Virus record (IMG/VR): IMGVR_UViG_3300042691_055965
Coordinates: 1-64,000 of that record
Length of the DNA stretch: 64,000 bases
Direction: 5' to 3' (one strand)
The notes beneath the pieces are model-generated. The model saw only the letters and a list, made by a program, of their open reading frames with translations, was not told where the DNA came from and searched no databases. The translations under genes and the position numbers were made by a program. Positions 3,640 to 58,807 of the stretch are shown here, piece after piece. The first letter of the stretch is position 1. Each line of letters begins with the position of its first letter.

Positions 3640-3696
3640 TTAAGCTAAAATAACGTTTTTTTGGGTAAAATACAACAAAATTAGGTATTTATTTGT

Positions 3697-6774: not shown

Positions 6775-8985
6775 ATGAAGCTTTTAAACATAATTTTCTT
6801 TTTTTTAACCTTTGTTGGTTATTCACAGTTCTGTCCAAATTTAGGACCCGATCAATATCTTGCGTGTGGTGTTGGTTCGACTACACTAACTGCGGACTTT
6901 AGTCAATGTGCACCTGGCAGTAACCCAAATCAAACAACAAACTATGGTGTAACAAACATACCATACGTGGCACAAACAAATACAGGGACATCACTTATAA
7001 TGGCTGATGATTCACAACAAGGACCTTTTAATATAGGATTTACTTTTTGTTTTTTTGGACAAACCTATACACAATTTTATGTTGGTTCTAATGGGTGGGT
7101 TTCATTTTCACCAGCTCAACCAACAACATTCACATCAACAACAATCCCATCAGGATTAGGAACAGTCCCAAAGAACTGTATCATGGGTCCTTGGCAAGAT
7201 TGGCATCCTGGAGTTGGGGGACAGATTAGATACCAAGTTCAAGGAACCGCACCATGTAGAAAATTGGTTGTTAGTTGGATAAACGTACCAATGTTTTCTT
7301 GTACTAACTTGACAGGGACATTTCATATTGTAATTTATGAATCAACAAACATTATTGAAAATCATATTCAAAATAAACCTAATTGCTTAGCTTGGGCAGG
7401 AGGAACTGCCGTACAAGGATTACATAACAACAATGGAACATTCGCAGTAACTGTACCAGGTAGAAACTCAACCCAGTGGACTGCTAATAATGATGCAAGA
7501 AGATACACACCAAGTGGGCCTACAGTTATCCCAACACCAACATGGTATCAAGTAGGTAACCCAACACCTATTGGTGTTGGAACATCTATTACGGTAACAC
7601 CACCACAAGCTGGTGCAAATTATACTTGTCAGTTAGTTTATCCTGCTTGTAACGTAGGATGGAACACTTGTAATAATATACCAGGACAAACACCTGACAC
7701 TGTATTTGTACAACCAGGTCCACCAAACCTACAACCATTAAATGTTACTTTTACAAACCCAACTTGTTTTCAAAGTTGTGATGGAACAATCGATGTTACC
7801 CCATCTAACGGAGTTGCTCCTTTTACCTATGTGTGGAGTAATGGACAAGGTACACCAAACCTTATTGATTTATGTGAAGGAATATATGATGTAACAGTAA
7901 CTGACAATCAAGGATGTGATGTAACGGCATCTGTAACACTTACTGATCCTCCACAAGTTGTTATTAATCCGATTCAATCAATCGATACGATTTGTGATTA
8001 TTCATCAAGTGAATTATATTTTGTAAACGACAACGGAAATGGTTACACATATACTTGGACAACACTTGGAAGTATTATAAACGGTCAAGGTAATGATTCA
8101 ATTTACATAAATTGGGACGATAACCCAAGTGGATTTGTTCCCCAAGGTGTGAGTGTAATTGGAATAAATTCGGATGGATGTGAAAGTTTACCTCAAGATT
8201 TTGATTTATACATTTTGGATATAAATCCAACTATACAACAAATCGGACCTTTTTGTGATTATGATGATTGTGCTGATTTGATAGTAAATCCAATTGGTGG
8301 TAATCTATCAGGTTTAGGTGTCAATAATAATCAATTTTGCCCTGATGTGTCTTTGGTTGGTAATAATTCAATTACATATGAATATACTCAAACAAATTGT
8401 ACGTTTGATACTACAATAACTGTGGTTGTAAACCCACAACCAATTTTAGATGACATTAATCCTGATGATGAAATGGTGGAATTTTGTGAAGGTGATATTG
8501 TTAATAGAATATATAGTGTAGAATCCAATTTAAATGGTGGTACTTACTATTGGATTTTAAATGGTGATACAACAGAATCTTACAGTTTAGGACAAAGTTG
8601 GGTTACTAATGGTTACTATACAATACAAGTTTATCAGGTGGTAAATGGATGTGTTTCAGAAACCCAATCAACAACAGTTAATTTGACGACTTGTCCTGAA
8701 GAATTAATTTTTATACCGAATACTTTTACACCTGATGGTGACGAATATAACCAAACATGGTTACCAATATTTACCGAAGGGTTCGATCCGTATGATTATC
8801 AATTAACTATTTTAAATAGATGGGGTGAAGTTGTTTTCGAAAGCAATAACCATACAATTGGATGGTTGGGTGATTACAACGGAAAGGCTTGTACTGAAGG
8901 TGTTTATACTTGGAAAATTGAATTTGGAAATTTAATAAACGATGCTAGAAAAGTACTAGTTGGGCATTTAACACTTATACGATGA
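6775..8985 (+). CDS. Secreted adhesin-like protein with T9SS type-B (gliding motility-associated, CHU_C) C-terminal domain
   Basis: Signal peptide; nidogen-like segment (DDSQQGPFNIGFTFCFFG..YVGSNG); SprB-like repeat (CDGTIDV..GVAPFTYVWSNG); CTD FIPNTFTPDGDEYN..LTILNRWGEVVF..GVYTW..GHLTLIR. Confidence 0.9.
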   Translation: MKLLNIIFFFLTFVGYSQFCPNLGPDQYLACGVGSTTLTADFSQCAPGSNPNQTTNYGVTNIPYVAQTNTGTSLIMADDSQQGPFNIGFTFCFFGQTYTQFYVGSNGWVSFSPAQPTTFTSTTIPSGLGTVPKNCIMGPWQDWHPGVGGQIRYQVQGTAPCRKLVVSWINVPMFSCTNLTGTFHIVIYESTNIIENHIQNKPNCLAWAGGTAVQGLHNNNGTFAVTVPGRNSTQWTANNDARRYTPSGPTVIPTPTWYQVGNPTPIGVGTSITVTPPQAGANYTCQLVYPACNVGWNTCNNIPGQTPDTVFVQPGPPNLQPLNVTFTNPTCFQSCDGTIDVTPSNGVAPFTYVWSNGQGTPNLIDLCEGIYDVTVTDNQGCDVTASVTLTDPPQVVINPIQSIDTICDYSSSELYFVNDNGNGYTYTWTTLGSIINGQGNDSIYINWDDNPSGFVPQGVSVIGINSDGCESLPQDFDLYILDINPTIQQIGPFCDYDDCADLIVNPIGGNLSGLGVNNNQFCPDVSLVGNNSITYEYTQTNCTFDTTITVVVNPQPILDDINPDDEMVEFCEGDIVNRIYSVESNLNGGTYYWILNGDTTESYSLGQSWVTNGYYTIQVYQVVNGCVSETQSTTVNLTTCPEELIFIPNTFTPDGDEYNQTWLPIFTEGFDPYDYQLTILNRWGEVVFESNNHTIGWLGDYNGKACTEGVYTWKIEFGNLINDARKVLVGHLTLIR

Positions 8986-9071: not shown

Positions 9072-9104
9072 ATAGTTTTAGAAAGATTTGTGATATTTAT
9101 ATGT

Positions 9105-10865
9105 ATGACAAATCTTTCAAAAATTTCGTTGGTAATATCAGCCTTTCTGATGTTATTGTTCCTGTGTTCACAATCATTACTTGTTTTTCATTTTATTGAA
9201 TATGTAGATATGATAGGGTATTTTGGTTACGCCATAATACTAGCATTTATCCCATTTTTTTCTGTGTTTGCATATGAATATGTTAAAAGAAACAAAATAG
9301 GTAAGGTAAAAGGTGAATATATAAAAAAACTTAATGAAACAATAATTTCACAATCCCATAATCCATTATTTTATGATGGTGATATTTCTGAAGGAGCAAA
9401 AATTCTAACAAAAGAAGTGTCCACTAATATGGATGTTGATAGATGTTCTGTGTGGCTATACAATGAGGATAGAAGTTCAATTGTATGTCAACAACTATAT
9501 GTTAAATCAGAAAATAGTTGGTATCAGAATATTGAACTACATAAAAAAGATTATTTGGATTACTTCCTTGCTCTTTTGTTAAATCCCGTGATTGTTGCAA
9601 ATGATGCTGAAACTCACCAAGCAACTTCTTGTTTTACTGAATCGTATTTGAAACCTTTGGGTATTAAATCAATGTTGGATGTTCCAATTGTTTATAAGGG
9701 TGACACTATCGGGGTTATTTGTATTGAAAGTTTAGAACCAAAAATGTGGGACAAATGTGAAATTGATTTTGCTCAGATGTTAGCATCACTTTATTCCTTT
9801 TCATACTCCGTAAAAGAAATCAATCGTATAAACAAAACAATAGATGATATTGAGCATTTCATTGATTATTCGGTATTAGTAAGTAAGGCAGACGCAAATG
9901 GTAAAATAACATATGTTAATAAAAGGTTTGAGGATGTATCAGGATGGAAACTAAAACAAGCAATGGGTAAAGACCACAGTATTGTAAATTCAGGTTTTCA
10001 CCCAAAGGAGTTTTGGAAGGATATGTATAAGACAACCGTAAAAGATAGAAAGATATGGAATAAGGTTGTGACAAACAAAAATAGAAATGGTGAAATATAT
10101 TGGGTTGATTCTTATATCATCGCTGAGTTTGATTCTGAAACAGACAAACTAAAAGGATTTATGTCTATTAGATACGATGTAACTGACTTGATGAAAAAAT
10201 CAGAAGAGATTGAAAAAAAGAATACCTATTTGGAACACGCAGCAAAGATATTACGTCACGATATGCACTCAGGTATCAACACCTATATCCCAAGAGGAAT
10301 TAGTTCACTAGAAAGAAGATTAAATGATGATGTAATCAAGGAATTAAAAATTGAATCCCCACTTAAAATGATTAAGGAAGGATTAAAACATTCACAAAAA
10401 GTTTATAAGGGTGTTTATGAATTTACCAATTTGGTTAAAAAAGATTCAAGAATGGGTAAAACTGAATGTAACCTCAAAACTATCTTGGATGAATACCTAC
10501 AATCAACGGCATATAAAAGTCAGGTGATTATTGAGGAATTACCAGTCACTGATGTAAACGAATCTTTATTTTGCACAGCAATTGACAACCTAATCAGAAA
10601 TGGTTTGAAATATAACGATAGTGATACCAAGTTTGTTAAAATATTTATGGAAGAAGACACACTAATTCTACAGGACAATGGTAGAGGGATGACACAAAAA
10701 GATTTTGAATACTTATCCCAACCTTACACAAGAAAACAAAACCAAAAGGAAGGTGGAACGGGACTTGGATTAAACATATGTATCGCAATCTTAAATGAAC
10801 ACGGGTTCAAAATTACCTGTGAGAAAAACGATATTGGAACTAAAATGAAGATTAAACTTAAATGA
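9105..10865 (+). CDS. Sensor histidine kinase 1 (2 TM-GAF-PAS-HisKA-HATPase)
   Basis: GAF (DRCSVWL..SMLDVPI..GVICIE), PAS (ITYVNKRF..SGW..GKDH..IYWVDSYI), H-box ILRHDMHSG, N box DNLIRNGLKYN, G1 DNGRG, G2 GTGLGL; likely ATG at 9105 after TATTTAT. Confidence 0.92.
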   Translation: MTNLSKISLVISAFLMLLFLCSQSLLVFHFIEYVDMIGYFGYAIILAFIPFFSVFAYEYVKRNKIGKVKGEYIKKLNETIISQSHNPLFYDGDISEGAKILTKEVSTNMDVDRCSVWLYNEDRSSIVCQQLYVKSENSWYQNIELHKKDYLDYFLALLLNPVIVANDAETHQATSCFTESYLKPLGIKSMLDVPIVYKGDTIGVICIESLEPKMWDKCEIDFAQMLASLYSFSYSVKEINRINKTIDDIEHFIDYSVLVSKADANGKITYVNKRFEDVSGWKLKQAMGKDHSIVNSGFHPKEFWKDMYKTTVKDRKIWNKVVTNKNRNGEIYWVDSYIIAEFDSETDKLKGFMSIRYDVTDLMKKSEEIEKKNTYLEHAAKILRHDMHSGINTYIPRGISSLERRLNDDVIKELKIESPLKMIKEGLKHSQKVYKGVYEFTNLVKKDSRMGKTECNLKTILDEYLQSTAYKSQVIIEELPVTDVNESLFCTAIDNLIRNGLKYNDSDTKFVKIFMEEDTLILQDNGRGMTQKDFEYLSQPYTRKQNQKEGGTGLGLNICIAILNEHGFKITCEKNDIGTKMKIKLK

Positions 10866-12277
10866 AAAAACTATTATTATTCTTAACAACTTTTATTTTT
10901 GTTGTGAATTCTTATTCACAATTAGAGGCGACTTGGGATCAAGGTGTTCCACTTTGTCCTGAAGACAAATACATTTCAGGTTTGATTGATAAGTTGGGGA
11001 ATAAAAATCTAACAGAACTTGATAGTTTAACTGATAACACAAACCTAAAACTTTTCAGAGAAATTGGTTTTGCGTTTTATGACAAAGGTATGTATGATGC
11101 TGCCGATTGGTATCTAAAAAGAGCAAAAAGATACAAAGAAAAAATTATTGTTGAAAAAACAAAAGACAAAGAAGAAACAAAACCAGAAATATCACAAGAA
11201 GATGCCAAACAAATGAAAAAAGATTTGGAGTTTTTAGGAGGTTTACCAAAATCATATGATAATTTATCAAAAGACGATATGTTGGAGTTGGCAAAAATGA
11301 TTAATAATAAAATTAATCAATTAACTAAAGAAAGGGATTCGATACTTAAAAGTGAAAAACCAAATGAAGAATTACTATCATCAAAAAATAACACAATCAA
11401 ATCATTAGAAAAAGAAAAAGAAGTAATTGATTTAACAATTGAAAGTGATGAATTAAAAGGCGAAACTAAAATATTAAACATAGAAAAGGCGACTTTGAAA
11501 AAGTATTTAACAGGATTAATAATTGGTGCATCAGTACTTATTTTATTCATCCTTGTACTTCTTCAAAGAAAAACAATTAGAGTTAAAGATACAGAAATAG
11601 ATAAACAACTAACCGATATCAATAAGAAAAACAAATACTTAGAATATTCAGCAAGAATCATAAGACACGATATGCACTCTGGTATCAATACTTACATTCC
11701 AAGAGGTATATCATCATTAGAAAAAAGAATCACCCAGGAAGATATTGAAAATCTTAAAATTGCTGCACCCATCAAAATGATTAAAGATGGTTTGAGTCAC
11801 ACACAAAAAGTTTACAAAAGAGTTTATGAATTCACAAACCTTGTAAAACAACAAGTGGTATTAGATAAAAAAGAAACGGACACAACAAAACTATTAACAG
11901 ATTACTTCCAATCCACTTCATATAAGAATCAAGTAGAGATTAGCGAATTAGTAATACTTGATATTAACGACACATTATTTTGTAACGCAATAGACAACTT
12001 AGTTAAAAACGGATTACAATATAACGATAGTGAAGACAAATTAGTTAAGATTTATATGGATAAAAATGACTTAATTGTGGAAGATAACGGTAGAGGGTTT
12101 ACACAAAAGGAATTAGAAACGATAACAGGGAAGTATTTAACTAAAAAGGGGGATTCTGAAATTGGTTTGGGATTAAGTATTAGTAAAACCATTTTAGAAG
12201 AACACGGATTTACAATGACTTGTGAAAAAATTAACAATGGAACTAAAATAAAAATTAAGACAAAAAAAGATGATTGA
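10862..12277 (+). CDS. Sensor histidine kinase 2 (signal peptide, TPR-like/coiled-coil periplasmic region, 1 TM)
   Basis: Kinase core paralogous to HK1: IIRHDMHSGINTYIPRG, DNLVKNGLQYN, DNGRG, GLGL. Confidence 0.9.
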   Translation: MKKLLLFLTTFIFVVNSYSQLEATWDQGVPLCPEDKYISGLIDKLGNKNLTELDSLTDNTNLKLFREIGFAFYDKGMYDAADWYLKRAKRYKEKIIVEKTKDKEETKPEISQEDAKQMKKDLEFLGGLPKSYDNLSKDDMLELAKMINNKINQLTKERDSILKSEKPNEELLSSKNNTIKSLEKEKEVIDLTIESDELKGETKILNIEKATLKKYLTGLIIGASVLILFILVLLQRKTIRVKDTEIDKQLTDINKKNKYLEYSARIIRHDMHSGINTYIPRGISSLEKRITQEDIENLKIAAPIKMIKDGLSHTQKVYKRVYEFTNLVKQQVVLDKKETDTTKLLTDYFQSTSYKNQVEISELVILDINDTLFCNAIDNLVKNGLQYNDSEDKLVKIYMDKNDLIVEDNGRGFTQKELETITGKYLTKKGDSEIGLGLSISKTILEEHGFTMTCEKINNGTKIKIKTKKDD

Positions 12278-12707
12278 TTCTATTTTATTGGTTGATGACG
12301 AAGATTTATTTCATTTAGTATTTGAGGACGCTTGTTCTCTACTTGATATAAGTTTATCTCTACAATCTATTAGTAGTGCAGACGAAGCAGCAAAGATGTT
12401 TAAACAATGGTTTGACGATAAGAATACCAAAGATAAACCTGAATGTGTATTTGTTGATTTAAATATAATTGGTAGTTCTTTTGATGGAATTGAGCTTGTA
12501 AGAAGAATTAACTTTGAATATGGTAATCATGTTGTTATTGGAATTATTTCTTCATCAAACGAACCAGATGAACAAGCAAAGGCACTTCAATCAGGTGCAC
12601 AATTTTGGATTATCAAATCAGATGAAATCGAACCAAGATTGGAAGAATTTAAAAAAGATTATGAGGGGTATAAAACAAGAACCGCTCCTTTTAAAATTTA
12701 CAGATGA
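12270..12707 (+). CDS. Stand-alone receiver-domain response regulator
   Basis: LLVDDED acidic pocket, VFVDLN phospho-acceptor Asp, IISSS, IIKS; no output domain. Confidence 0.92.
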   Translation: MIDSILLVDDEDLFHLVFEDACSLLDISLSLQSISSADEAAKMFKQWFDDKNTKDKPECVFVDLNIIGSSFDGIELVRRINFEYGNHVVIGIISSSNEPDEQAKALQSGAQFWIIKSDEIEPRLEEFKKDYEGYKTRTAPFKIYR

Positions 12708-13381
12708 TTAAAATAGATAAAAATACAAAGAAAACTTTATTAGAACTATACAAAAATAAAGGTATAGGACTTGAAGGTAATATCACAAAACTCATCGATG
12801 GTGAAGACGATGAAGACTTCAAAAAGTATTTAAAAGAATGTGAAACAAAAGATTCTGAAAAAAGACGAAAACGTCTTGAAATGACAAAAAAGATTCAAAA
12901 ACAAAATGAAGATTTAAAGTCATTGAACACTCAGAATCAACAAATACTTGAGGAACTTCAAACAACACTCAAAGAAGTTGAAGATTCCAAAATGACATTT
13001 GAGGTTCAAAACAGAGAACTTAACGAATGGAAACAAGATAACCTACGACTTACCGAAGAACTTAAAAACGAAATGGTAAAGTCAGAACAGGCAAGAATAG
13101 AAGCAGAAAAGGCAAAAGAAAGTGCAATTAACGATTTGGACATTATCCAAAAAAGAAATCAAACAGAACTTATATCAACAATTGTGAAAGTTGCTCTTTG
13201 GGTAATAATTGGTGTTGGTGTTGTTACAACTGGCGTCTATGTGTTTACTTTATTTATGGAAAAAGATACACAAGTTATAAGCGCTGCTTGGTCTAATATA
13301 TTTGGGATTTTGTTAACAAATGCTTTTTCAATAGTTGGAACAATAATGGGTATCAAATATGCCACAGAAAATAAACAATAA
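12704..13381 (+). CDS. Coiled-coil protein with two C-terminal TM helices (possible holin/antiholin or relay effector)
   Basis: Long K/E/Q heptad region, then VALWVIIGVGVVTTGVYVFTLF and IFGILLTNAFSIVGTIMGI. Confidence 0.8.
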   Translation: MIKIDKNTKKTLLELYKNKGIGLEGNITKLIDGEDDEDFKKYLKECETKDSEKRRKRLEMTKKIQKQNEDLKSLNTQNQQILEELQTTLKEVEDSKMTFEVQNRELNEWKQDNLRLTEELKNEMVKSEQARIEAEKAKESAINDLDIIQKRNQTELISTIVKVALWVIIGVGVVTTGVYVFTLFMEKDTQVISAAWSNIFGILLTNAFSIVGTIMGIKYATENKQ

Positions 13382-13394
13382 ATAAATAATTAAA

Positions 13395-14216
13395 ATGTTA
13401 CTAAAAGTAGGTTCAAAAGGGGACGATGTAAAAAAACTACAAACCAAACTCGGTTTAACTGCCGATGGTTCATTCGGTCCAAACACAGAAAAGAAAGTTA
13501 AAGAATGGCAACAAGCAAATGGATTAACTGCCGATGGTATTGTTGGTTCAGGTACTTGGACAAAAATGTTTGGTGGTGAAGTGATAAAAGAAGATGTGGT
13601 AATTGCACCTGTTCAGGGATTAAACATCGAAAAACTAAAAGGGACAATTCCTGATGGTGTTATTGCACAAATTGCAGAAACCGCAAAGAAATTTAATATT
13701 ACAAACAATTTAAGACTTGCACACTTTTTAGCTCAATGTGCACACGAATCAGGTAGTTTTAAAGCGGTATCAGAAAATCTAAATTATTCCGTTGATGGGT
13801 TAAAAAAAGTATTTGGAAAGTACTTTCCTGGAAATCTTGCAGAATCTTACGCTAAACAACCTGAAAAGATTGCTTCCCGTGTTTACGGTGGAAGAATGGG
13901 TAATGGTGATGAATCAACAAAAGAAGGATTTAAATTCAGAGGAAGGGGATATATTCAATTGACAGGTAAATCAAACTACGTTAAATTTACACAATTCATC
14001 GGTGAAGATTGTGTGGCAAATCCTGATTTAGTTGCTACAAAATATCCGTTAGCATCCGCGGCGTTTTTCTTTAATAACAATAGTTTGTGGAGTATCTGTG
14101 ATAAAGGAGCTGACGATGCAACAGTAACCGCAGTCACCAAAAGAGTTAATGGAGGAACACATGGTTTGGCTGACAGAATTTCTAAATTCAAAACATATTA
14201 TAATTTATTGAAATAA
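13395..14216 (+). CDS. Modular endolysin: PG-binding domain + GH19 glycoside hydrolase
   Basis: GSKGDDVKKLQ..DGSFGPNT..DGIVG PG-binding motif; HFLAQCAHES, FRGRGYIQLTGKSNY, TKRVNGG. Confidence 0.92.
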   Translation: MLLKVGSKGDDVKKLQTKLGLTADGSFGPNTEKKVKEWQQANGLTADGIVGSGTWTKMFGGEVIKEDVVIAPVQGLNIEKLKGTIPDGVIAQIAETAKKFNITNNLRLAHFLAQCAHESGSFKAVSENLNYSVDGLKKVFGKYFPGNLAESYAKQPEKIASRVYGGRMGNGDESTKEGFKFRGRGYIQLTGKSNYVKFTQFIGEDCVANPDLVATKYPLASAAFFFNNNSLWSICDKGADDATVTAVTKRVNGGTHGLADRISKFKTYYNLLK

Positions 14217-14395: not shown

Positions 14396-14961
14396 CTTTC
14401 TATTCTTTCTTTCAAAATTTTAAACAATAAGTCTTTTGCCTTTTGTTGGTTATGTCTTGCAATATACATACAATATTCTCTTTTTGTCCCTTGGGGATGT
14501 TCCTTATAAACCTGTCTTAAAGAGGACTTATATTTTGAAAGATATTCACCGTATCTTTCGGATTTAACATTTATTTCTAATCTTTTGTGTTTTGGAAACC
14601 CCTCAACATCTTTCATAAGATACTCACTATCCTCATAATCATGGAACTCAATTGAATAGTAATCGTTTCTTACTCTGTCAATTAAGTTAAGAACAATAGT
14701 CATATCACGGTTGTCAATATCTATTCTTGTGTGTCTGTTGGATTTAACAAGATATTCCCTTTGAAACTCTATCTTTTTTTGTATTATATTAAAAATAAAG
14801 TCACTGTCCCAATCTCTTTGTTTCCAAATTGTAGGAAACCATTTGATTATATTGGATACACCTGTACAAAAGTTACGAATAGAAGAGGGAAATTTATACC
14901 ATAGGAATTTTCTTTCCCATGCGGAATCTTTAGGTATTGGTAGTTTTTTGTAATTTTTCAT
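14383..14961 (-). CDS. Phage hypothetical protein
   Basis: Likely start MKNYKKLP; WKQRDWD and ERWWD motifs. Confidence 0.7.
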   Translation of the reverse strand: MKNYKKLPIPKDSAWERKFLWYKFPSSIRNFCTGVSNIIKWFPTIWKQRDWDSDFIFNIIQKKIEFQREYLVKSNRHTRIDIDNRDMTIVLNLIDRVRNDYYSIEFHDYEDSEYLMKDVEGFPKHKRLEINVKSERYGEYLSKYKSSLRQVYKEHPQGTKREYCMYIARHNQQKAKDLLFKILKERIERWWD

Positions 14962-15142
14962 CTTCTTTGTCTTTCCACTCCAAATATACGGCAAAAATCA
15001 TTAAGAAGTTAATCATTACACACAAAAAAATTTCTAAAAGATAATGCCAATCAATTTGGGTTACACCAACATGAGTTCCTAACCACATAAAAGAACCATA
15101 TTTATTCATTATTTGAACTATAAGGTATTTGAAAAATTTCAT
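14930..15142 (-). CDS. Small membrane protein
   Basis: 70 aa with a hydrophobic helix; TAATG-coupled to the upstream gene. Confidence 0.55.
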   Translation of the reverse strand: MKFFKYLIVQIMNKYGSFMWLGTHVGVTQIDWHYLLEIFLCVMINFLMIFAVYLEWKDKEDEKLQKTTNT

Positions 15143-19871: not shown

Positions 19872-22133
19872 ATGAAAAAAATAATTGAAGAAGAAATACT
19901 AAGACAGTTACAACTTATTAATTTTGATAAAGGTAAAACTATTAGTGAACAATATATGGCTGGTGGTGGACGTGAAATTGCGGCAGCAACATATGAAACG
20001 TCAAAATACATACAAGATGAGAATAAAAAAGAAGATGAAAGTTATCAATACCTTTATGATAAATGGGCACCATATGTTTGTGGAACAGGTGGTGGTGGAA
20101 TAAGTCCTGATAATTCCTTTGGTGCGGTAGCAGGGTATTGTGATTGGGTAAAAAATGGTTTAACACCTTTTGATATTTGTAATTCTCCAATAGTTGATGT
20201 AAAATATAATCATCCAACAAAAGATTTTTACCCATTGAATTATGCTCAAGAAGTTAATAAAAGAAGAAAAGAAGGAAAAAAATACGTCCAAACAGGTGGA
20301 GGTATTGTCGTAAAAAAAGAAAAAGGATATCTTTATAATACATATTGGTGCGAATGTAAAAAAGATGTGGAATTTTATGCACCTACTGAATATAATTCTA
20401 ACTTACCTACGGGTTCATTTTTCAAATTGGACGGTCCTTTGAATTTGAAGTATGTGACAAATGTCCCAACAGTAACAAGTGTTAATGATTGGTTTGACTT
20501 GAAAAAATGTACAGCAACAAATAAAGCTGAGGAGGTTGTTGATAAATATTTTCATACAGTTGCTCCATTCATATCATTAGTGTTGAATTTTTTCGGTCCC
20601 ATTGGTATGGCTTTAGGTGCAGTTATTGAATTTGCGGATGGTGTAAAATATCAAGAAGAAGGTAATACATATGCTGCGGGTTTGTCATATACTTTTGCCG
20701 CATTAGGTCCTTTAGATTTTGGTTTGAGCCCTTTTATTAAATCAAGTGGGAATTCTTTGATAAAAAAAACCTTGATAAAATCCTCAAAATATAGTGTAAA
20801 TGAAATTAAACTTTTGCAATTTCTAAAAAATACAAACCAAACTATGCGATTGGTAAGATTGGGAACTGCTTTTAAATTTGTAAGAGTTGCTATGACATAT
20901 ATAATGAAGTCAAAAATATTCGGATTATTTCTTCTAAAACTTATTAATCTTGGTGTTGCAACAACAGCTATTTTATCGAAATTAGGTTTAATCATTGGTG
21001 GGGGGTTTATTGGTTGGGATTACATTGCATACAAATATGAAATCCAAAATACCATGCCACTTGTTGAATTAAAAAAATCAAATTGGAAAATTTTGAAACT
21101 TCTTGGTGATTTAGGTCCTCATTTACAACCGTTTACTACAGGTGTCATGTCAACAAATCCTGAAGTTGAAAAAATATTTGAAGAATTTGACAAAGAAATT
21201 TCTATGAAAAACAGAATAATAAACGTTATACAAGATAATATCGAAAGTGGTGAAGAGTTTAGTGAAAAATTATCAAAAGTGTACAGCGTTGACTTAGTAT
21301 TCATTCAAATGGCGTTAGAAAGTTTAGGGTTTGCAAAAAATATATCATCTAGTTTTACAGTATATAAAAGTTCTACTTTGTGGGGTTTTAAAAATGCCGT
21401 CAACATTCAAAAAATTCAAATGTTTGCACGTAATACTTTAACAGGAATAGGGGTACTTTCGATGAAATCATTAGAAGCTGTAGAATCAAACTTGACAGAA
21501 AAAGATGGAACGTTAGTACAAGAATGGAACCCTTATAACGGTCGTCCTATTACTTATGTTTATTTGAAAAGGGATATTGGTAAAAAACATTTTTTAATAA
21601 TAACCGACAAATTTGGTAAGAAAAAATCAATAAATTTAAATAGTTCTTTTGAAGAAATGTCATTTGGAATGAAGACTGCGGATGTTGACACAAGTTTCCA
21701 CTGGGGATTTTTTGACAATTTTACAAAGGCATCAGTTATGGAATTTCAGAAAAAAAATGGTATATCACCGTCAGATGGTATTGCAGGAACAAAAACATTA
21801 ATAAAGTTACAAAATATATTAAAATCAAAAAGTGATGAAGTTAAAAATTATGCAAACATAAATTACACTGACGAAGAAATTGATGAACTTAGAGAAGAAC
21901 TCTTAGATAGTCTTGAAGATGTTAAAAAACGTACAGATAAAAAAATGTTAATTTCTGAAAAAGATATGCAAAATGCATACATAAAACAAAAAAATGGATT
22001 AATTAATGAAGCTGAAATATTTTTAAATAAAAATTATGAAGGTCTTAATGTTTCAGACACTACTGTTTATGAAGTAGAATTATTTTTAGAAAAGGCTAAA
22101 AATGGTAGTTTAACAGAAAACGATTTAAAATAA
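19872..22133 (+). CDS. Large putative virion/ejection protein with hydrophobic helices and PG-binding-like domain
   Basis: Class-B leader; FISLVLNFFGPIGMALGAVI segment; TKASVMEFQKKNGI..DGIAGTKT PG-binding motif. Confidence 0.7.
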   Translation: MKKIIEEEILRQLQLINFDKGKTISEQYMAGGGREIAAATYETSKYIQDENKKEDESYQYLYDKWAPYVCGTGGGGISPDNSFGAVAGYCDWVKNGLTPFDICNSPIVDVKYNHPTKDFYPLNYAQEVNKRRKEGKKYVQTGGGIVVKKEKGYLYNTYWCECKKDVEFYAPTEYNSNLPTGSFFKLDGPLNLKYVTNVPTVTSVNDWFDLKKCTATNKAEEVVDKYFHTVAPFISLVLNFFGPIGMALGAVIEFADGVKYQEEGNTYAAGLSYTFAALGPLDFGLSPFIKSSGNSLIKKTLIKSSKYSVNEIKLLQFLKNTNQTMRLVRLGTAFKFVRVAMTYIMKSKIFGLFLLKLINLGVATTAILSKLGLIIGGGFIGWDYIAYKYEIQNTMPLVELKKSNWKILKLLGDLGPHLQPFTTGVMSTNPEVEKIFEEFDKEISMKNRIINVIQDNIESGEEFSEKLSKVYSVDLVFIQMALESLGFAKNISSSFTVYKSSTLWGFKNAVNIQKIQMFARNTLTGIGVLSMKSLEAVESNLTEKDGTLVQEWNPYNGRPITYVYLKRDIGKKHFLIITDKFGKKKSINLNSSFEEMSFGMKTADVDTSFHWGFFDNFTKASVMEFQKKNGISPSDGIAGTKTLIKLQNILKSKSDEVKNYANINYTDEEIDELREELLDSLEDVKKRTDKKMLISEKDMQNAYIKQKNGLINEAEIFLNKNYEGLNVSDTTVYEVELFLEKAKNGSLTENDLK

Positions 22134-45232: not shown

Positions 45233-45280
45233 ATCTATATTTTATATATAAATATGGCGATAAGTACAAAACTTCCGGCG

Positions 45281-45697
45281 TGGAGGTGCGGAGAGTCGAA
45301 CTCCGGTCCATAACATCCTGTCAGATAAGGACTACACGTTTAGGTTAAGGTTTTTCATACCTTCCAAAATATTTGGTTCCTATTTTGACATTGTTACCAA
45401 CAACTGTGTCGAGTTCACTTTTGTTACGGTAGCACTCTGAACGAGACCGTTTGTTTCTTTTCGGGTAGAAACCACACCTTTGTAAAGACTTCTGTTGCTA
45501 GGTTATATGTCCACCGACCCCCCGTTTCCGTGCTTAACTTAAGCTACAGTAACTTCTTCAGTTGAAATTAAACCAACCACTGAAAGGTTTTCTAAAACGT
45601 CGCCATTTGCAACTTGAATCAGTTTTTAAGGAGATTAATTCAGTCCCCACGTGCCCTTATTCTTCAGCCAATGCCTGTCAAATCCAAAACCACCCCC
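45281..45697 (-). ncRNA. ssrA: tmRNA (417 nt), tag ANGDVLENLSVVGLISTEEVTVA*
   Basis: 5' GGGGGTG..TTGGATTTGAC pairs with 3' CACCTCC-A including the G3:U70 Ala determinant; T-arm CCGGAGTTCGACTCTCCG; tag ORF 45610..45539. Confidence 0.92.
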
Positions 45698-47996: not shown

Positions 47997-50045
47997 TTAT
48001 TGTGTTTTTATTTTTCTTTTTGTTGGTTTTTTTATTTTAATATCTGTTTTATCTTCTTTTTGATTGTATGATAAAATAAACTTGGAATTTTTTTCTGGGT
48101 TATCAGAAAGGATTTTATCTGTTATATAATCGTCAACCCATTTCTGAACCGTTCTTTTTAAAATCCTTGCTCCAAACCTTGTATCAGTTCCAATTGAAAT
48201 AATATGTTTTTTCAAGGTATCGTCAACCTCAACATCAAATTCAATTTTTCTAACTCTTTCATATACTTTTTCCAATTCCAAATCAATAATTTCCATCAAG
48301 TTATCTTCATCCAAATCTTTGAAATAAACAATATCATCAAATCTATTTATAAATTCTGGAACAAATCTTTTGAAAAGTTCTTTTTCCAACACTGATTTTA
48401 TTTCTTCTTCTTTTTGTTCAATTTTTGTTGCCGTCGAAAATCCTACACCTGTTCCAAATTGTTGAACGGCTCTTGTTCCAACATTTGATGTCATCAATAT
48501 AATACAATTTTTGAAATTGATTTTTCTTCCATGTCCATCGGTTAAAAATCCTTCATCGAGCATTTGCAAAAACACATTGAAGATTTCAGGGTGGGCTTTT
48601 TCAATTTCATCAAGTAAAATAACAGAATATGGTTTGTTTTTAATTTTATTCAAAAAAGGAGAACCATCATCATATCCAACATAACCTGGCGATGTTCCTG
48701 TTAATTTTGATGTTGATATTTTATCTGAAAATTCGCTCATGTCAAGTCTGATAAGAGCATCTTCTGAATTGAACATATGTTTTGCAAGTTGTTTTGCAAG
48801 TTCCGTTTTTCCAACACCGGAATTACCAATTAAAAGTCCACTGAATATCGGTCTTTTTGGATCGTTCAAACCAACTTTATTTCTTTGGATAGCTCTTGCA
48901 ATTTTTGCAATTGCATCATCTTGTCCAATAACCTTTTTATTAAGTGTGTCCTTTAATGTTTTAAGTTGTTCTGATTCATCAGTTGTGATTTTATTGATTG
49001 GAATTTTTGTCATAAGTGACACAACATCATAAACAATATCTTCTGTTACTTCTCTTTTGAAAAGGTTTCTATTTTTTTCAAATTCATCTTTTTCCTTTTC
49101 AAGCTCAAGAAGTATTTTTCTTTCTTTATCTCTTAAATTTGCTGCTTCTTCGTACTTTTGACTATTAATAACTCGAATTTTTTCCTTTTTAATGTCTTCT
49201 GCCTTTTTTTTCAAATCTTCGATAATTTCAGGTAATTTGATTTCAACTTGCGACCTGGCACCAACCTCATCGATTATATCAAACGCCTTGTCAGGAAATT
49301 CTCTATCTGTGATGTAACGATCAGCCAATTCAACACAAAGTTTTAATATGTCATCACTGTACTTTACCTTATGATAATCTTCATACCTTTCTTTTGTATT
49401 ATACAAGATTTCAAGTGTTTCTTCTTTTGTTGACGGATCTACCATTACCTTTTGAAACCTCCTTTCAAGTGCTCCGTCCTTTTCAATGTTTTTTCTATAT
49501 TCTTCAAGTGTTGTTGCTCCAATACATTGTAATTCACCACGGGACAGGGCTGGTTTGAAAATATTTGATGCATCCATTGTACCTGATGCGTTTCCTGCAC
49601 CAATCATTGTATGAATTTCATCGATGAAAATAATAATGTCAGGATTTGCATAAAGTTCTTCCATTATAACTTTCATTCTTTCTTCAAATTGTCCTCTGTA
49701 TTTTGTTCCTGCAACAACAGATGTCATGTCTAATGAAACAATTCTTTTATTTGCCAAATTTTGGGGACAATCACCTTCGAATATTTTCTTTGCAAGTCCT
49801 TCAATAATTGCTGTTTTTCCACAACCAGGTTCACCAAGAACGATTGGGTTGTTCTTTTTTCTTCTTGATAAAATCTGTGCAATTCTATTGATTTCGTTTT
49901 CTCTCCCAACAATCGGGTCTAGTTTTCCTTCTTCTGCTAGTAATATTAAATCTCTTGAAAAATTATCCAAAACGGGGGTTTTTGACGAACCTGTTGATTG
50001 TGATTTGTTTTTGGATTTTTCGTTGCTATCTGCTGAATCAATCAT
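47997..50045 (-). CDS. clpC: ClpC-like double AAA+ ATPase lacking the N-terminal Clp repeat domain
   Basis: Walker A GEPGCGKT and GNSGVGKT; Walker B IFIDEIH and ILLDEIEKAHP; UVR motif YEEAANLRD; GVGF ClpP-docking loop. Confidence 0.9.
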   Translation of the reverse strand: MIDSADSNEKSKNKSQSTGSSKTPVLDNFSRDLILLAEEGKLDPIVGRENEINRIAQILSRRKKNNPIVLGEPGCGKTAIIEGLAKKIFEGDCPQNLANKRIVSLDMTSVVAGTKYRGQFEERMKVIMEELYANPDIIIFIDEIHTMIGAGNASGTMDASNIFKPALSRGELQCIGATTLEEYRKNIEKDGALERRFQKVMVDPSTKEETLEILYNTKERYEDYHKVKYSDDILKLCVELADRYITDREFPDKAFDIIDEVGARSQVEIKLPEIIEDLKKKAEDIKKEKIRVINSQKYEEAANLRDKERKILLELEKEKDEFEKNRNLFKREVTEDIVYDVVSLMTKIPINKITTDESEQLKTLKDTLNKKVIGQDDAIAKIARAIQRNKVGLNDPKRPIFSGLLIGNSGVGKTELAKQLAKHMFNSEDALIRLDMSEFSDKISTSKLTGTSPGYVGYDDGSPFLNKIKNKPYSVILLDEIEKAHPEIFNVFLQMLDEGFLTDGHGRKINFKNCIILMTSNVGTRAVQQFGTGVGFSTATKIEQKEEEIKSVLEKELFKRFVPEFINRFDDIVYFKDLDEDNLMEIIDLELEKVYERVRKIEFDVEVDDTLKKHIISIGTDTRFGARILKRTVQKWVDDYITDKILSDNPEKNSKFILSYNQKEDKTDIKIKKPTKRKIKTQ

Positions 50046-55191: not shown

Positions 55192-56967
55192 ATGGCGTTA
55201 TCAAAAGAACAAGCACTATTAGAATATGCAAAATGTGTAAAGGACACACCCTACGCACTTAAAACATATTTGCAAACTTACGATAACACACAATCAAAAT
55301 ATGTTCCGTTAGAACTGTTTAATGATCAAGTAACACTTGTAAAAGATTACGATGAATGTGAAGAAAACATCGCACTTAAATATCGACAAGCAGGTGTATC
55401 AACAGTAACATCTGCATGGGCTTCCAAAAGACTTGTTTTTGCAAGAAAGGAAAAACCTGAAAAAATTCTTATAATCGCTAACAAATTGGACACGGCAGTC
55501 GAAATGGCAAACAAAGTTCGTGCGTTTGTTGATCAGTGGCCGAAATGGATGGGTGTAACATTTTCAAATGAAAAAAATTCACAAAGACACTTTAAATTAA
55601 CTAATGGGTGTGAAGTGAAGGCGGTTGCAACATCAAAAGATGCACTTCGTGGTTATACACCAACGATACTAATATTTGACGAAGCGGCGTACATTGATGC
55701 CGATGAAGATTTTTGGTCTGCGTGTATGGCGTCTTTATCAACAGGGGGTAAAGTTATTGTAATTTCAACACCAAACGGATTCGACCCAATTTACTACTCT
55801 ATATACAGTCAAGCAATCAAAGGAATGAATGACTTTAGAATAACAGAAATGTATTGGTATCGTGATCCACGATATTCAAAAGATTTAAAACTTATAAAAT
55901 GTGATGACATTGTTCACTATATGCTGAATAGAAGTGATTATAATGATAATGAAATCACATTAGACTATAGTCAAATAAAAGTTAGTGACAGAAATTTTCC
56001 TGAAATAAAAGAAAAAATTGAAAATGGTTATAAGGCATATAGTTCTTGGTTCGAGGCTATGGCTAAAAAACTTAAATTCGATAAGAGAAAAATTTCACAG
56101 GAATTAGAATGTAACTTTTTAGGTTCAGGGGATAATGTAATCCCACCTGAAACTATGAAAAAAATAAAAGAAAACCATATCAAAGAACCTGAAAATAAAT
56201 TTATGGGTGGTGCTCTTTGGCAATGGAAAGAACCAATTGCAGGACACCGATATATTATGGGTGTTGATGTATCAAGAGGTGATAGTGAAGATTTTAGTAC
56301 AATATCAGTGATTGATTTTGACAATAGGGAACAAGTATTAGAATACATGGGAAAAATTCCACCTGATGTACTTGCAGAAATCGCATATAAATGGGGAACT
56401 ATGTATAACGCCTTTATTGTTACCGATATAACGGGGGGTATGGGTGTTTCTACATCAAGAAAACTACAAGAACTAGGATATAGAAATTTATATGTTGATG
56501 GAGTAAATCCAGCAGATAAATGGAAGTGGAACCCTAAGGCACAAGATAAAATACCGGGAATTAATTTTAATGCAAAAAGAGTTTTAATTATACAAGCGTT
56601 TGAAGAAGCGTTAAGATATGACTTTTCTTTAAAATCACAAAGATTATTTAATGAACTAAATACGTTTGTATATGTGAATGGTAGACCTGATCACCAAAAA
56701 GGACAACATGATGACTTAATTATGTCTTTTGCAATGGCGATATATGTTGCTGAAACTTCTTTTGCACAATTGGAAAAAGCAACAGAACAAACTAAGGCAA
56801 TGATTGAATCTTGGCAAGTTGAATCAAAGGTTCATGCCGATCCAACAAGAAGTTTTAATCCAGGTATACCTGTTGATGTTTATGGTATGAACAATTTCCC
56901 AAAAAGTGGACCGACTAAAAGTGACTATGAAAACTATTTATGGTTATTCGGTAAAGGAAGGGTTTAG
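55192..56967 (+). CDS. terL: Terminase large subunit (T4 gp17-like)
   Basis: KYRQAGVST Walker A, ILIFDEAA Walker B, VISTPNG, nuclease GVDVSRG and HDDLIM. Confidence 0.95.
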   Translation: MALSKEQALLEYAKCVKDTPYALKTYLQTYDNTQSKYVPLELFNDQVTLVKDYDECEENIALKYRQAGVSTVTSAWASKRLVFARKEKPEKILIIANKLDTAVEMANKVRAFVDQWPKWMGVTFSNEKNSQRHFKLTNGCEVKAVATSKDALRGYTPTILIFDEAAYIDADEDFWSACMASLSTGGKVIVISTPNGFDPIYYSIYSQAIKGMNDFRITEMYWYRDPRYSKDLKLIKCDDIVHYMLNRSDYNDNEITLDYSQIKVSDRNFPEIKEKIENGYKAYSSWFEAMAKKLKFDKRKISQELECNFLGSGDNVIPPETMKKIKENHIKEPENKFMGGALWQWKEPIAGHRYIMGVDVSRGDSEDFSTISVIDFDNREQVLEYMGKIPPDVLAEIAYKWGTMYNAFIVTDITGGMGVSTSRKLQELGYRNLYVDGVNPADKWKWNPKAQDKIPGINFNAKRVLIIQAFEEALRYDFSLKSQRLFNELNTFVYVNGRPDHQKGQHDDLIMSFAMAIYVAETSFAQLEKATEQTKAMIESWQVESKVHADPTRSFNPGIPVDVYGMNNFPKSGPTKSDYENYLWLFGKGRV

Positions 56968-57007: not shown

Positions 57008-58807
57008 ATGGCACAAGACAAATATACAATATGGCAAAGGTTGAGTAAGACATTCGGTCCAAGTGCTACACTCGATCAACAATCACCCGTATTCAAGTTC
57101 GATAAAAAAGAACTATTAAAAACAACAGATAAACAAGAATATGAAGTTGAAAAACTTCAAGCACAACAAACTGTTTATTTGGGTAAACAATGGCAAAAGG
57201 TTGAATCTAACCTTTACCAACAAGCAGTATATTATGAACCAACAAGAATGGCTTCATATTATGACTATGAATCAATGGAATATACACCTGAAATATCGGC
57301 AGCTCTTGATGTTTATGCTGAAGAATCTACAACACCCGATAAAGATGGTGATATATTAAAAGTTTATTCTGAATCAAAAAGAATTAAATCTGTTTTGACT
57401 GATTTATTTGTCACCAGAATGGATATTAATACAAATCTCCCAATGTGGACAAGAAACACTTGTAAATTTGGTGACAACTTTATTTATTTGAAATTGGATC
57501 CAGAAAAAGGTGTTGTAGGATGTCAACAATTACCGAATATCCAAATTGAAAGATTGGAAAAAGGGATGCGTTTTCAACCTGACAAGTATTCACAAGAAAT
57601 GGAAAACGATGCATTGAAGTTTGTATGGAAAGAAAAAAACATGGAATTCAATCTTTGGGAAGTAGGACATTTCAGAATATTAGGTGATGACAGAAAACTT
57701 CCTTACGGAACATCTATGTTAGAAAAAGCAAGAAGAATTTGGAAACAATTATTACTTTCTGAAGATGCTATGTTAATATACAGGGTGTCAAGAGCACCTG
57801 AAAGAAGAGTGTTTAAGGTATTTGTTGGAAACATGGATGATAAAGATGTTGACCCATATGTACAAAGAGTTGCAAACAAATTCAAACGAGATCAGATTGC
57901 TGATCCCAAAACAGGTAACGTTGATATGAGGTACAATCAGTTGGCAGTCGATCAAGACTTCTTTATTCCTGTTAGAGATCCGGCACAAACAAACCCAATA
58001 GAGACATTACCTGGTGGTACAAACTTGGCGGAAATCGCAGATATTGAATATATCCAAAAGAAATTGGTTACCGCACTTCGTGTACCAAAGGCTTATTTAG
58101 GTTTTGAAGAAGCGGTGGGTGATGGTAAAAACTTATCATTACTTGATATTAGATTTGCAAGAACAATCAATAGAATCCAAAAATCAATGTTGGCGGAATT
58201 GAATAAAATTGCGATTATACATTTATTTTTGTTAGGGTTTGAAGATGAATTAACAAATTTCAGTCTTGGACTTCACAACCCATCCAAACAAGCAGATTTA
58301 CTTGGTGTGGAAGTATGGAAAGAAAAAATTACGTTATACAAAGACGCTGTTGCACCGATTCAAGATTCAGTTGCTCCTGTTTCAGCGTCATGGGCTAAGA
58401 AACACATACTTGGATTTAGTGATGAAGAAATTAGACTTGACTTACAACAACAGAGGGTTGAAAGAGCGGTTGCTGCTGAACTTGGTAAAACTGCAGAAGT
58501 TATTACTAAAACAGGATTATTTGATAATATCGATAATTTATATGGTAAAAAGGATTCTGAACCTGCAGGGGCACCTGCTGAAGGTGGAGGAATGCCTCCT
58601 GAACCAGGAGGTGGGGCACCTCCACCACCGAGTGAACCACCAGCAGGTGGTGAAGCCGCAGTAACACCTGAAAGATTTGTTAAAGATGGGTTAGATTTGA
58701 TACTAGAAGAAACGTTATTTTATGGAAATGATACACTAGATTTGTCCAAAGGAAAAAATTCTCTTGTAGAAATAAATGAAAAACTTAACGATTTAATCAA
58801 CAAGTAA
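57008..58807 (+). CDS. Portal protein (T4 gp20-like)
   Basis: YGTSMLEKARRIWKQL.L.EDAMLIYRVSRAPERRVF, ETLPGG.NL.EIADIEY..KKL..AL.VP. Confidence 0.95.
   Translation: MAQDKYTIWQRLSKTFGPSATLDQQSPVFKFDKKELLKTTDKQEYEVEKLQAQQTVYLGKQWQKVESNLYQQAVYYEPTRMASYYDYESMEYTPEISAALDVYAEESTTPDKDGDILKVYSESKRIKSVLTDLFVTRMDINTNLPMWTRNTCKFGDNFIYLKLDPEKGVVGCQQLPNIQIERLEKGMRFQPDKYSQEMENDALKFVWKEKNMEFNLWEVGHFRILGDDRKLPYGTSMLEKARRIWKQLLLSEDAMLIYRVSRAPERRVFKVFVGNMDDKDVDPYVQRVANKFKRDQIADPKTGNVDMRYNQLAVDQDFFIPVRDPAQTNPIETLPGGTNLAEIADIEYIQKKLVTALRVPKAYLGFEEAVGDGKNLSLLDIRFARTINRIQKSMLAELNKIAIIHLFLLGFEDELTNFSLGLHNPSKQADLLGVEVWKEKITLYKDAVAPIQDSVAPVSASWAKKHILGFSDEEIRLDLQQQRVERAVAAELGKTAEVITKTGLFDNIDNLYGKKDSEPAGAPAEGGGMPPEPGGGAPPPPSEPPAGGEAAVTPERFVKDGLDLILEETLFYGNDTLDLSKGKNSLVEINEKLNDLINK

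Follow-up and report, generated by a model that had tools for sequence, protein, structure and literature searches.

A phage-borne kinase-receiver module of uncultured Bacteroidota jumbo phages is followed by a coiled-coil membrane protein and usually lies among lysis genes

We found that an uncultured jumbo phage of Bacteroidota carries a two-component signalling module in which a sensor kinase and a stand-alone receiver are followed by a conserved coiled-coil protein with a predicted membrane anchor. In relatives this trio usually sits among cell-wall hydrolase and holin genes, which suggests that these phages sense a signal to decide when to burst the cell. The window analyzed here is a 64,000-nt stretch (positions 1 to 64,000 of IMG/VR record IMGVR_UViG_3300042691_055965) that carries terminase and portal genes and is phage DNA. 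A preliminary description made from the sequence alone had proposed that five genes at 9105-14216 form a phage-owned two-kinase phosphorelay, cotranscribed with the endolysin, that integrates cytoplasmic and periplasmic cues to time lysis. The arrangement that it described is confirmed by our analysis. Its interpretation, on the other hand, is only partly supported.

The five genes are codirectional on the plus strand. The first histidine kinase (HK1) runs from 9105 (or 9090) to 10865, the second (HK2) from 10862 to 12277, the receiver (REC) from 12270 to 12707, the coiled-coil protein ending in a two-helix membrane hairpin (CC2TM) from 12704 to 13381, and the endolysin from 13395 to 14216. 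The first four genes overlap by 4, 8 and 4 nt, and a 13-nt gap precedes the endolysin. No terminator-like site was found inside 9105-14216. A TATTTAT motif at 9094-9100 (+), a candidate promoter or start-site element heading the block, lies 11 nt before the ATG at 9105, and because of this spacing we preferred that start over the GTG at 9090. The same motif is found 11-13 nt before the ATG of at least 13 of the 58 genes of the window. The preliminary description had named a promoter private to the endolysin as an observation that would count against it; the motif is absent before HK2, REC, CC2TM and the endolysin.

HK1 is a membrane-anchored kinase with two N-terminal TM helices. Pfam searches identified GAF (residues 101-234, E 6e-16), PAS (263-366) and HATPase_c (E 2e-13) domains, and the sensor part varies among relatives. 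HK2 has a signal or anchor helix, an exported helical sensor, one TM helix and a HATPase_c domain (E 4e-13). The two kinase cores are 57% identical over 221 aa (E 4e-83) and share the H-box RHDMHSGINTYIPRG, a divergent H-box (RHDMHSGINTY in HK1) that is invariant in 156 non-identical cores. The N, G1, F and G2 boxes of a GHKL ATPase are present, and the DNLIRNGLKYN, DNGRG and GLGL motifs are conserved in the 156 cores. Whether the DHp helix carries a phospho-acceptor His was not settled by these data, as Pfam returned no HisKA hit, although the invariant RHDMHSG lines up by eye with the HisKA pattern H-E-L-R-T-P-L and lies in the long helix entering the catalytic domain in the AF2 model. In the AF2 model of HK2, a long helix (169-289) crosses the membrane into the DHp. 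The HK2 sensor had been called TPR-like, yet no TPR family, nor any other Pfam family, matched it even at E<=10, and the AF2 model shows a mostly helical exported region with at most one TPR-like helix pair (residues 59-89).

REC is a stand-alone receiver of 145 aa (Response_reg, 37.4 bits against a cut-off of 30.2) with a complete active site. D9, D10, D63 and S94-96 are invariant in 128 unique sequences, and the lysine of the IIKS motif is conserved in at least 95% of them. Asp63 is the predicted phospho-acceptor. The catalytic residues of the kinase and receiver are intact, as initially proposed, and under strong purifying selection. In contrast, "phosphorelay" is the wrong word for two kinases converging on one receiver, as the block encodes no Hpt or Spo0B-like second His carrier and no terminal second receiver. 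REC also lacks any output domain, including the LytTR DNA-binding output of LytSR-type regulators.

CC2TM (225 aa) has a conserved N-terminal module of about 70 aa, a variable-length cytoplasmic coiled coil and a C-terminal two-helix membrane hairpin with a near-invariant TM2. The AF2 model (pLDDT 85) shows one helix (37-184) running into TM1 and TM2 at 190-222. TM2 is invariant at the amino acid level despite saturated synonymous sites. CC2TM matched no Pfam family and no Pfam or PHROG lysis family; we obtained only a weak match to phrog_1544, of unknown function, and the best holin-family match was Phage_holin_9 at E 0.35 for the TM hairpin. The endolysin combines an N-terminal PG_binding_1 domain (E 3e-14) with a C-terminal Glyco_hydro_19 domain (E 2e-9), as in modular GH19 endolysins. 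Its N terminus is hydrophilic, with no signal peptide or TM helix, and the enzyme therefore needs a membrane lesion to reach the wall. The gene is 67-72% identical at the DNA level to endolysin or chitinase genes of Flavobacterium phage immuto and of two uncultured huge phages, and relatives are annotated as endolysin in Flavobacterium and Caulobacter phages.

To examine whether the five-gene order recurs in related phages, a comparison that the preliminary description had itself put forward as a test, we gathered 121 non-identical relatives from IMG/VR and MAGs. The order kinase core, then REC, then CC2TM is invariant in these loci, while the flanks are mosaic, and CC2TM accompanies the receiver in every sufficiently complete phage locus. 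The REC stop overlaps the CC2TM start, by 4 or 1 nt, in 109 of 119 junctions. REC is the most conserved gene of the trio, with a median identity of 81%. Conversely, the second kinase is present in only 10 of 72 well-flanked loci, and HK2-type cores are monophyletic (support 0.94), indicating a lineage-specific extra. Cotranscription with the endolysin is not conserved either, as the endolysin gene is found downstream, upstream and divergent (GH19 in 13 of 72 loci) or upstream and codirectional, and is absent or replaced by GH24, M15 or an unnamed hydrolase in other loci. All loci come from related phages and the counts are not fully independent, although the many rearrangements argue against simple inheritance.

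It had also been anticipated that a block residing mostly in host chromosomes, as a recently captured unit, would contradict a phage role. Homologous kinase-receiver pairs do exist on bacterial DNA: one locus (L159) lies on a 967-kb Bacteroidetes MAG contig with ordinary chromosomal neighbours, and four others (L243-L246) are similar. However, besides the terminase and portal genes of the window, relatives sit on IMG/VR contigs of up to 322 kb, and more than 500 IMG/VR stretches and 6267 protein clusters at 90% identity carry CC2TM relatives. Phage cores are diverse, and the few cellular cores nest inside them in a midpoint-rooted tree. Furthermore, the cellular cassettes lack the TM-hairpin version of the third gene. 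Therefore, a recently captured host operon, or a bacterial or chimeric contig, with no phage-specific role is very unlikely and already largely refuted.

The cellular cassettes of Bacteroidota (L243-L246 and L157, uncharacterized) are nevertheless the closest relatives of the phage module. They encode a kinase with the same RHDMH H-box (core 60% identical), a stand-alone REC 72% identical whose stop overlaps the next start, a third gene, and then an AraC-type gene, with ordinary chromosomal neighbours and no lysis genes. The first ~110 aa of the third gene product are homologous to the N-terminal module plus proximal coiled coil of CC2TM (37-39% identity, E 1e-17 to 1e-19), but are fused to HisKA and HATPase_c domains instead of a TM hairpin. 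A profile of the N-terminal module found it only at N termini, in proteins of these two length classes apart from truncated fragments. Hence, the module is a portable input that follows this receiver. These observations bear on the possibility that CC2TM is only a membrane scaffold or feedback partner and that the receiver acts on host proteins, for example as a phosphate sink or by cross-talk with host two-component systems. Single-domain receivers are known to act as sinks or connectors, and REC, the most conserved component, is 61-72% identical to cellular Bacteroidota receivers and could plausibly engage host partners. However, the constant association of CC2TM with REC, the recurrence of its N-terminal module behind the same receiver with a different output, which is the signature of an input module and not of a scaffold, and the very strong selection on TM2 make this explanation unlikely.

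We next assessed the linkage of the trio to lysis genes, since a block usually found away from them had likewise been named as grounds for rejection. Peptidoglycan-hydrolase genes lie within 1.5 kb in 45 of 72 loci, with a density of 0.29 per kb compared to 0.004 per kb at 1.5-10 kb, an enrichment of about 70-fold. Four enzyme types (GH19, GH24, Peptidase_M15_3 and the unnamed "CL1", which is fused to PG_binding_1 in one lineage) occur in at least 10 arrangements. Where GH19 lies just downstream, it starts 10-14 nt after CC2TM in 29 of 34 measured junctions. Pfam holins sit in the same clusters, Phage_holin_10 in 14 of 72 loci and Phage_holin_4_1 in 8 of 72. The module is thus strongly linked to lysis genes. 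In contrast, 22 of 72 loci have no recognized lysis gene within 1.5 kb, and T9SS-sorted SprB-repeat proteins and other envelope genes also recur near the trio. Adjacency could reflect shared timing or a shared envelope theme, and the trio could serve another membrane or envelope process, such as superinfection exclusion, control of host envelope physiology or gliding/T9SS functions, or a developmental checkpoint. The lack of a holin-family match is compatible with this view, and the extreme conservation of TM2 would fit binding to a conserved host membrane target. Given the hydrolase enrichment with non-orthologous replacement, the clustered holins and the tight CC2TM-GH19 junctions, we consider this alternative unlikely, though not negligible.

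The explanation that we favor, at about even confidence, is that this two-component module has a membrane protein of the lysis cassette as its output. In this model, a membrane-anchored kinase autophosphorylates on the His of RH*DMH. Its sensor is cytoplasmic and interchangeable (GAF-PAS here), and in a minority of phages, including this one, a second paralogous kinase with an exported helical sensor is also present. The phosphoryl group would pass to Asp63 of REC. The two kinases have nearly identical DHp helices, so both probably serve the same receiver, in a many-to-one input. Phosphorylated REC would dock on the N-terminal module of CC2TM, and the long coiled coil, continuous with TM1, would transmit the change to the GxxxG-containing hairpin and alter its assembly in the inner membrane. 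This would permit or delay membrane permeabilization, and so the access of the endolysin to the wall, either directly or by triggering whichever canonical holin the phage carries. Gene content, intact motifs, conservation, gene order and coupling, linkage to lysis genes and the cellular domain-swap relative were established by our analysis, while phosphotransfer, contact between REC and CC2TM, the effect on the membrane, the sign of regulation and the signals sensed are inferences. No experimental evidence bears on the model, phosphotransfer and membrane lesions were not assayed, and no multimer prediction or contact evidence exists for REC with CC2TM. The cues initially suggested (redox, light, superinfection) have no evidence.

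In its broadest form, which we regard as possible but somewhat less likely than not, an abundant group of uncultured jumbo phages gates host lysis non-transcriptionally with its own sensory two-component system, the phosphorylated receiver switching a coiled-coil-coupled membrane hairpin that triggers or blocks permeabilization. Interchangeable sensor domains (GAF, PAS or an exported helical domain) would let different phages tune burst time to different cues. Phage lysis timing is classically set by holin clocks and, in a few cases, by antiholins. We found no match to the module in 50,697 deposited phage genomes, no cultured phage that carries it, and no phage-owned sensor-kinase pathway feeding into lysis in full-text literature searches. 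If the model is right, lysis timing in a widespread freshwater and marine phage group would become signal-dependent and directly testable, a new output type would be defined for single-domain response regulators, namely an N-terminal module plus coiled coil that can drive either a kinase or a membrane hairpin, and synthetic biology would gain a compact signal-to-lysis switch. Even if lysis is not the target, a complete and highly conserved two-component system carried by phages is unusual.

T4 lysis inhibition, in which antiholin RI acts on holin T, shares only the concept of a phage-encoded sensor that adjusts the time of lysis in response to a signal; sequences were not compared. RI/T works by direct periplasmic protein binding, without kinases. 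In our model, the route would be His-Asp phosphotransfer to a cytoplasmic receiver. The LytSR system of Firmicutes is a two-component system linked to the holin-like membrane proteins LrgAB/CidAB (PMC3507848). That system is cellular and its regulator acts on transcription, whereas here the link is by adjacency and coupling to a membrane protein.

CC2TM resembles class II holins and, as a lead only, the XhlA-type lysis proteins of PBSX, which have a cytoplasmic coiled coil plus a C-terminal TM helix, by its predicted N-in/C-in two-helix hairpin, its GxxxG motif and its position 13 nt upstream of the endolysin. However, it has a cytoplasmic domain of about 150 aa, is larger and far more conserved than typical holins, and recognized holins co-occur in at least 22 of 72 relatives. 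On gene position and topology, the evidence leaves it undecided whether CC2TM is a holin; it need not be one and may not form holes. Finally, REC resembles single-domain response regulators that control partner proteins by contact (CheY, DivK, Rcp-type), from which it differs in that its gene is phage-borne and its inferred partner is a new N-terminal module on a coiled-coil membrane protein. Its closest solved structures are 3ilh, a two-component response regulator of 146 aa, and 4zyl (RphyB).

The window is phage DNA, as it encodes a large terminase (55192-56967), a portal (57008-58807), tail-fibre-like proteins and a tmRNA (45278-45697, minus strand; Rfam RF00023, 97 bits) for which ARAGORN predicts the tag peptide EKKQTVSFRVLP. 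It has about 30% G+C and is identical over the tested part to a 229-kb IMG/VR contig (L146). The gene located immediately upstream of the kinase block (6775-8985, plus strand) carries an SprB repeat, a PKD-like domain and a type IX secretion (CHU_C/type B) sorting domain, and the nearest cultured relatives of the endolysin belong to Flavobacterium phages. Both observations point to a Bacteroidota host. A phage-encoded T9SS cargo is unusual, and homologues of this gene recur near the kinase-receiver-CC2TM trio in several related loci (L006, L011 and L062).

The observation reported in the preliminary description proved correct. At 9105-14216, we found five co-directional ORFs with exactly the junctions that it gave (overlaps of 4, 8 and 4 nt, followed by a 13-nt gap). 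HK1 has two N-terminal TM helices followed by GAF, PAS and HATPase_c domains, whereas HK2 has an N-terminal hydrophobic helix, about 190 exported residues, one TM helix and HATPase_c. These are followed by a 145-aa stand-alone receiver (REC), a 225-aa protein with no family (CC2TM), and a PG_binding_1 + GH19 endolysin without an export signal. The kinase cores are 57% identical and share the H-box RHDMHSGINTYIPRG. This motif escapes the HisKA model, although by inspection it fits the HisKA pattern (His followed by an acidic residue) and lies in the helix that enters the catalytic domain in the AF2 model. A Pfam search of the HK2 sensor at E<=10 gave nothing significant. LOV or bilin chemistry for the PAS and GAF domains was not pursued, and the sequence, judged by inspection only, shows no NCRFL-type or Cys-His signature.

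No terminator-like site lies inside the block. A scan for sigma-70 promoters was uninformative, with 49 sites found against 55 expected. The TATTTAT heptamer at 9094 is not a chance curiosity, as it sits 11-13 nt before the ATG of at least 13 of 58 genes (for example at 3686, 6764, 9094, 19070, 26006, 28613, 36019, 42177, 45763 and 52075), typically the first gene after an intergenic gap, and is absent before the four downstream genes of the block. This favours the ATG at 9105 as the start of HK1 and fits a single transcript in this phage. The heptamer may be a phage promoter giving very short leaders, or a start-site element.

We then carried out the synteny comparison that had been suggested as a test of the five-gene arrangement. 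IMG/VR was searched with the kinase core, with CC2TM and with a divergent CC2TM alignment, and GTDB genomes were searched with the core. This yielded 121 non-identical copies of the unit, 72 of them with at least 3 kb on both sides. In every copy, the order is kinase core, then receiver, then CC2TM on one strand, and the REC stop overlaps the CC2TM start by 4 or 1 nt in 109 of 119 measured junctions, while the surrounding genes are otherwise a mosaic. The receiver is the most conserved part (median 81% identity to the window), followed by the kinase core (67%) and CC2TM (59%). In the receiver, D9, D10, D63 and S94-96 are invariant in 128 sequences and the IIKS lysine is conserved in at least 95%, and the H-box and ATP-binding motifs are conserved in 156 kinase cores. 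Conversely, the sensor part is interchangeable: 25 loci have GAF+PAS as in the window, 32 match only the PAS, and 12 match neither.

The interpretation of the block as a two-kinase phosphorelay in one operon with the endolysin was only partly supported. A second kinase occurs in only 10 of the 72 well-flanked loci, and HK2-type cores form one clade (support 0.94) inside the phage kinase tree, which indicates a single duplication. Furthermore, the DHp helices of HK1 and HK2 are almost identical. By the established rule that these residues set partner specificity, both kinases should serve the same receiver. There is no Hpt and no second receiver, so 'phosphorelay' is a misnomer.

The alignment and the AF2 model (pLDDT 85) of CC2TM show a conserved N-terminal module of about 70 residues, one uninterrupted helix from residue 37 to 184, a short outside loop and TM2. 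The helix forms a coiled-coil stalk that runs directly into TM1. In the CC2TM gene (12704-13381) and its relatives, the length of this stalk varies by a 35-residue (five-heptad) block, whereas the N-module and TM2 stay fixed. TM2 (WSN-FGILLTNAFSIVGTIMG-KY) is almost invariant across 135 different nucleotide sequences, although synonymous sites are saturated, and its invariant residues include T205, N206, G212 and G216. The distribution of charged residues suggests an N-in/C-in topology. No significant relative was found in Pfam (searched with pieces of CC2TM at E<=10) or among PHROG lysis families, and a fold search of the CC2TM model against BFVD and PDB gave only an uncharacterised homologue and no significant solved structure.

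The GH19 gene is not fixed in place. In the 72 well-flanked loci, it lies just downstream and co-directional in 20 (most often 10-14 nt after CC2TM), upstream and divergent in 13, and upstream and co-directional in 3. Where GH19 is missing, other wall hydrolases take its place next to the trio, namely GH24 lysozyme, Peptidase_M15_3, and an unnamed family of about 200 aa that we refer to as CL1 (in the related loci L004, 8273-8878, minus strand, and L021, 7893-8687, plus strand). CL1 has no Pfam match, but it hits an endolysin PHROG (E 3.5e-10), is fused to PG_binding_1 in one lineage, and lies divergently upstream of the trio in 14 loci. It is probably an undescribed peptidoglycan hydrolase. 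Overall, 45 of 72 loci have a wall-hydrolase gene within 1.5 kb, and the density of such genes is 0.29 per kb there against 0.004 per kb at 1.5-10 kb, about 70-fold higher. Adding the Phage_holin_4_1 gene raises this to 50 of 72 loci.

Recognised holins also lie in these clusters. Phage_holin_10 (E 1e-15) follows GH19 in 14 loci, and Phage_holin_4_1 lies within 1.5 kb of the trio in 8 loci, directly before the kinase in most of them. The latter is 55-63% identical to the annotated holin that follows the GH19 endolysin of Flavobacterium phage immuto. In the window itself, no homologue of those holins was found, and small membrane ORFs near the endolysin (14930-15142, minus strand) match no holin family. 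The window thus shows neither a holin nor spanins near the trio. Therefore, the trio is a component of lysis cassettes, but CC2TM is an additional membrane component rather than necessarily the holin. A signalling module for another envelope process that merely neighbours lysis genes remains possible, though we consider it unlikely.

A few Bacteroidota contigs with ordinary chromosomal neighbours (L159 and L243-L246) carry a kinase with the same H-box (60% identical) and a receiver 61-72% identical. In L243-L246 and in a further locus, L157, the next gene again overlaps the receiver's stop. It begins with a module homologous to CC2TM residues 1-115 (37-39% identity, E 1e-17 to 1e-19) and then continues into HisKA + HATPase_c instead of a membrane hairpin. 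This uncharacterised cellular cassette (L243, 179-3855; L157, 6177-9090) consists of a kinase with the RHDMH H-box, a stand-alone receiver, an N-module-coiled-coil-HisKA-HATPase kinase and, in L243-L246, a membrane AraC-type gene, and looks like a receiver-controlled second kinase. An exhaustive profile search with the N-module found 199 cluster representatives, in which the match is always at the N-terminus. Apart from truncated fragments, these proteins fall into two length classes, about 190-240 aa (hairpin type) and about 318-349 aa (kinase type). This domain swap is the best evidence that the N-module plus coiled coil is the element that receives the signal from this receiver and passes it along the helix to whatever output is attached.

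In the mechanism that we propose, the sensor kinase (or kinases) would phosphorylate REC Asp63, and the phosphorylated receiver would bind the CC2TM N-module, a contact for which no multimer was modelled here. The coiled coil would then change register or packing, the assembly state of the invariant hairpin in the membrane would change, and lysis would be advanced or delayed as a result. The hairpin of CC2TM is invariant while the accompanying holin family varies or is absent. We therefore favour an autonomous effect on the membrane, for example a small depolarising lesion that would trigger any holin, over specific antiholin-holin pairing. This last step, the sign of regulation and the signals sensed are all inferred rather than observed. 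A receiver that targets host proteins, with CC2TM as a scaffold, appears to be a doubtful alternative. A recently captured host operon or a non-phage contig was rejected as very improbable, as it is contradicted by the terminase and portal genes, by the wealth of CC2TM relatives in IMG/VR and other metagenomes, and by the kinase tree.

tblastn searches of the INPHARED collection with CC2TM and the kinase core returned no real match in 50,697 deposited phage genomes, yet CC2TM relatives form 6267 clusters at 90% identity in metagenomes. A comparative review of jumbo phages mentions only a divergent receiver that is never linked to kinases (PMC7824862), and other literature searches for phage-encoded kinases or two-component control of lysis found no description. 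The parts are of known kinds, namely a two-component system, an endolysin and a membrane hairpin. What is new is their combination, the phage ownership, the new receiver-to-coiled-coil output, and the embedding in lysis cassettes.

Elsewhere in the window, an ATP-dependent protease homologue (phrog_4871, E 3e-222) is encoded at 47997-50045 (minus strand), and the C-terminal part of a 753-aa protein (19872-22133, plus strand) matches endolysin PHROGs weakly, suggesting that it may be a virion-associated lysin. Furthermore, related loci carry, close to the trio, a calcineurin-like phosphoesterase next to a cREC-type receiver domain, and a full-length Hsp70 (DnaK) homologue (L006, 15233-16404; L009, 12130-14001).
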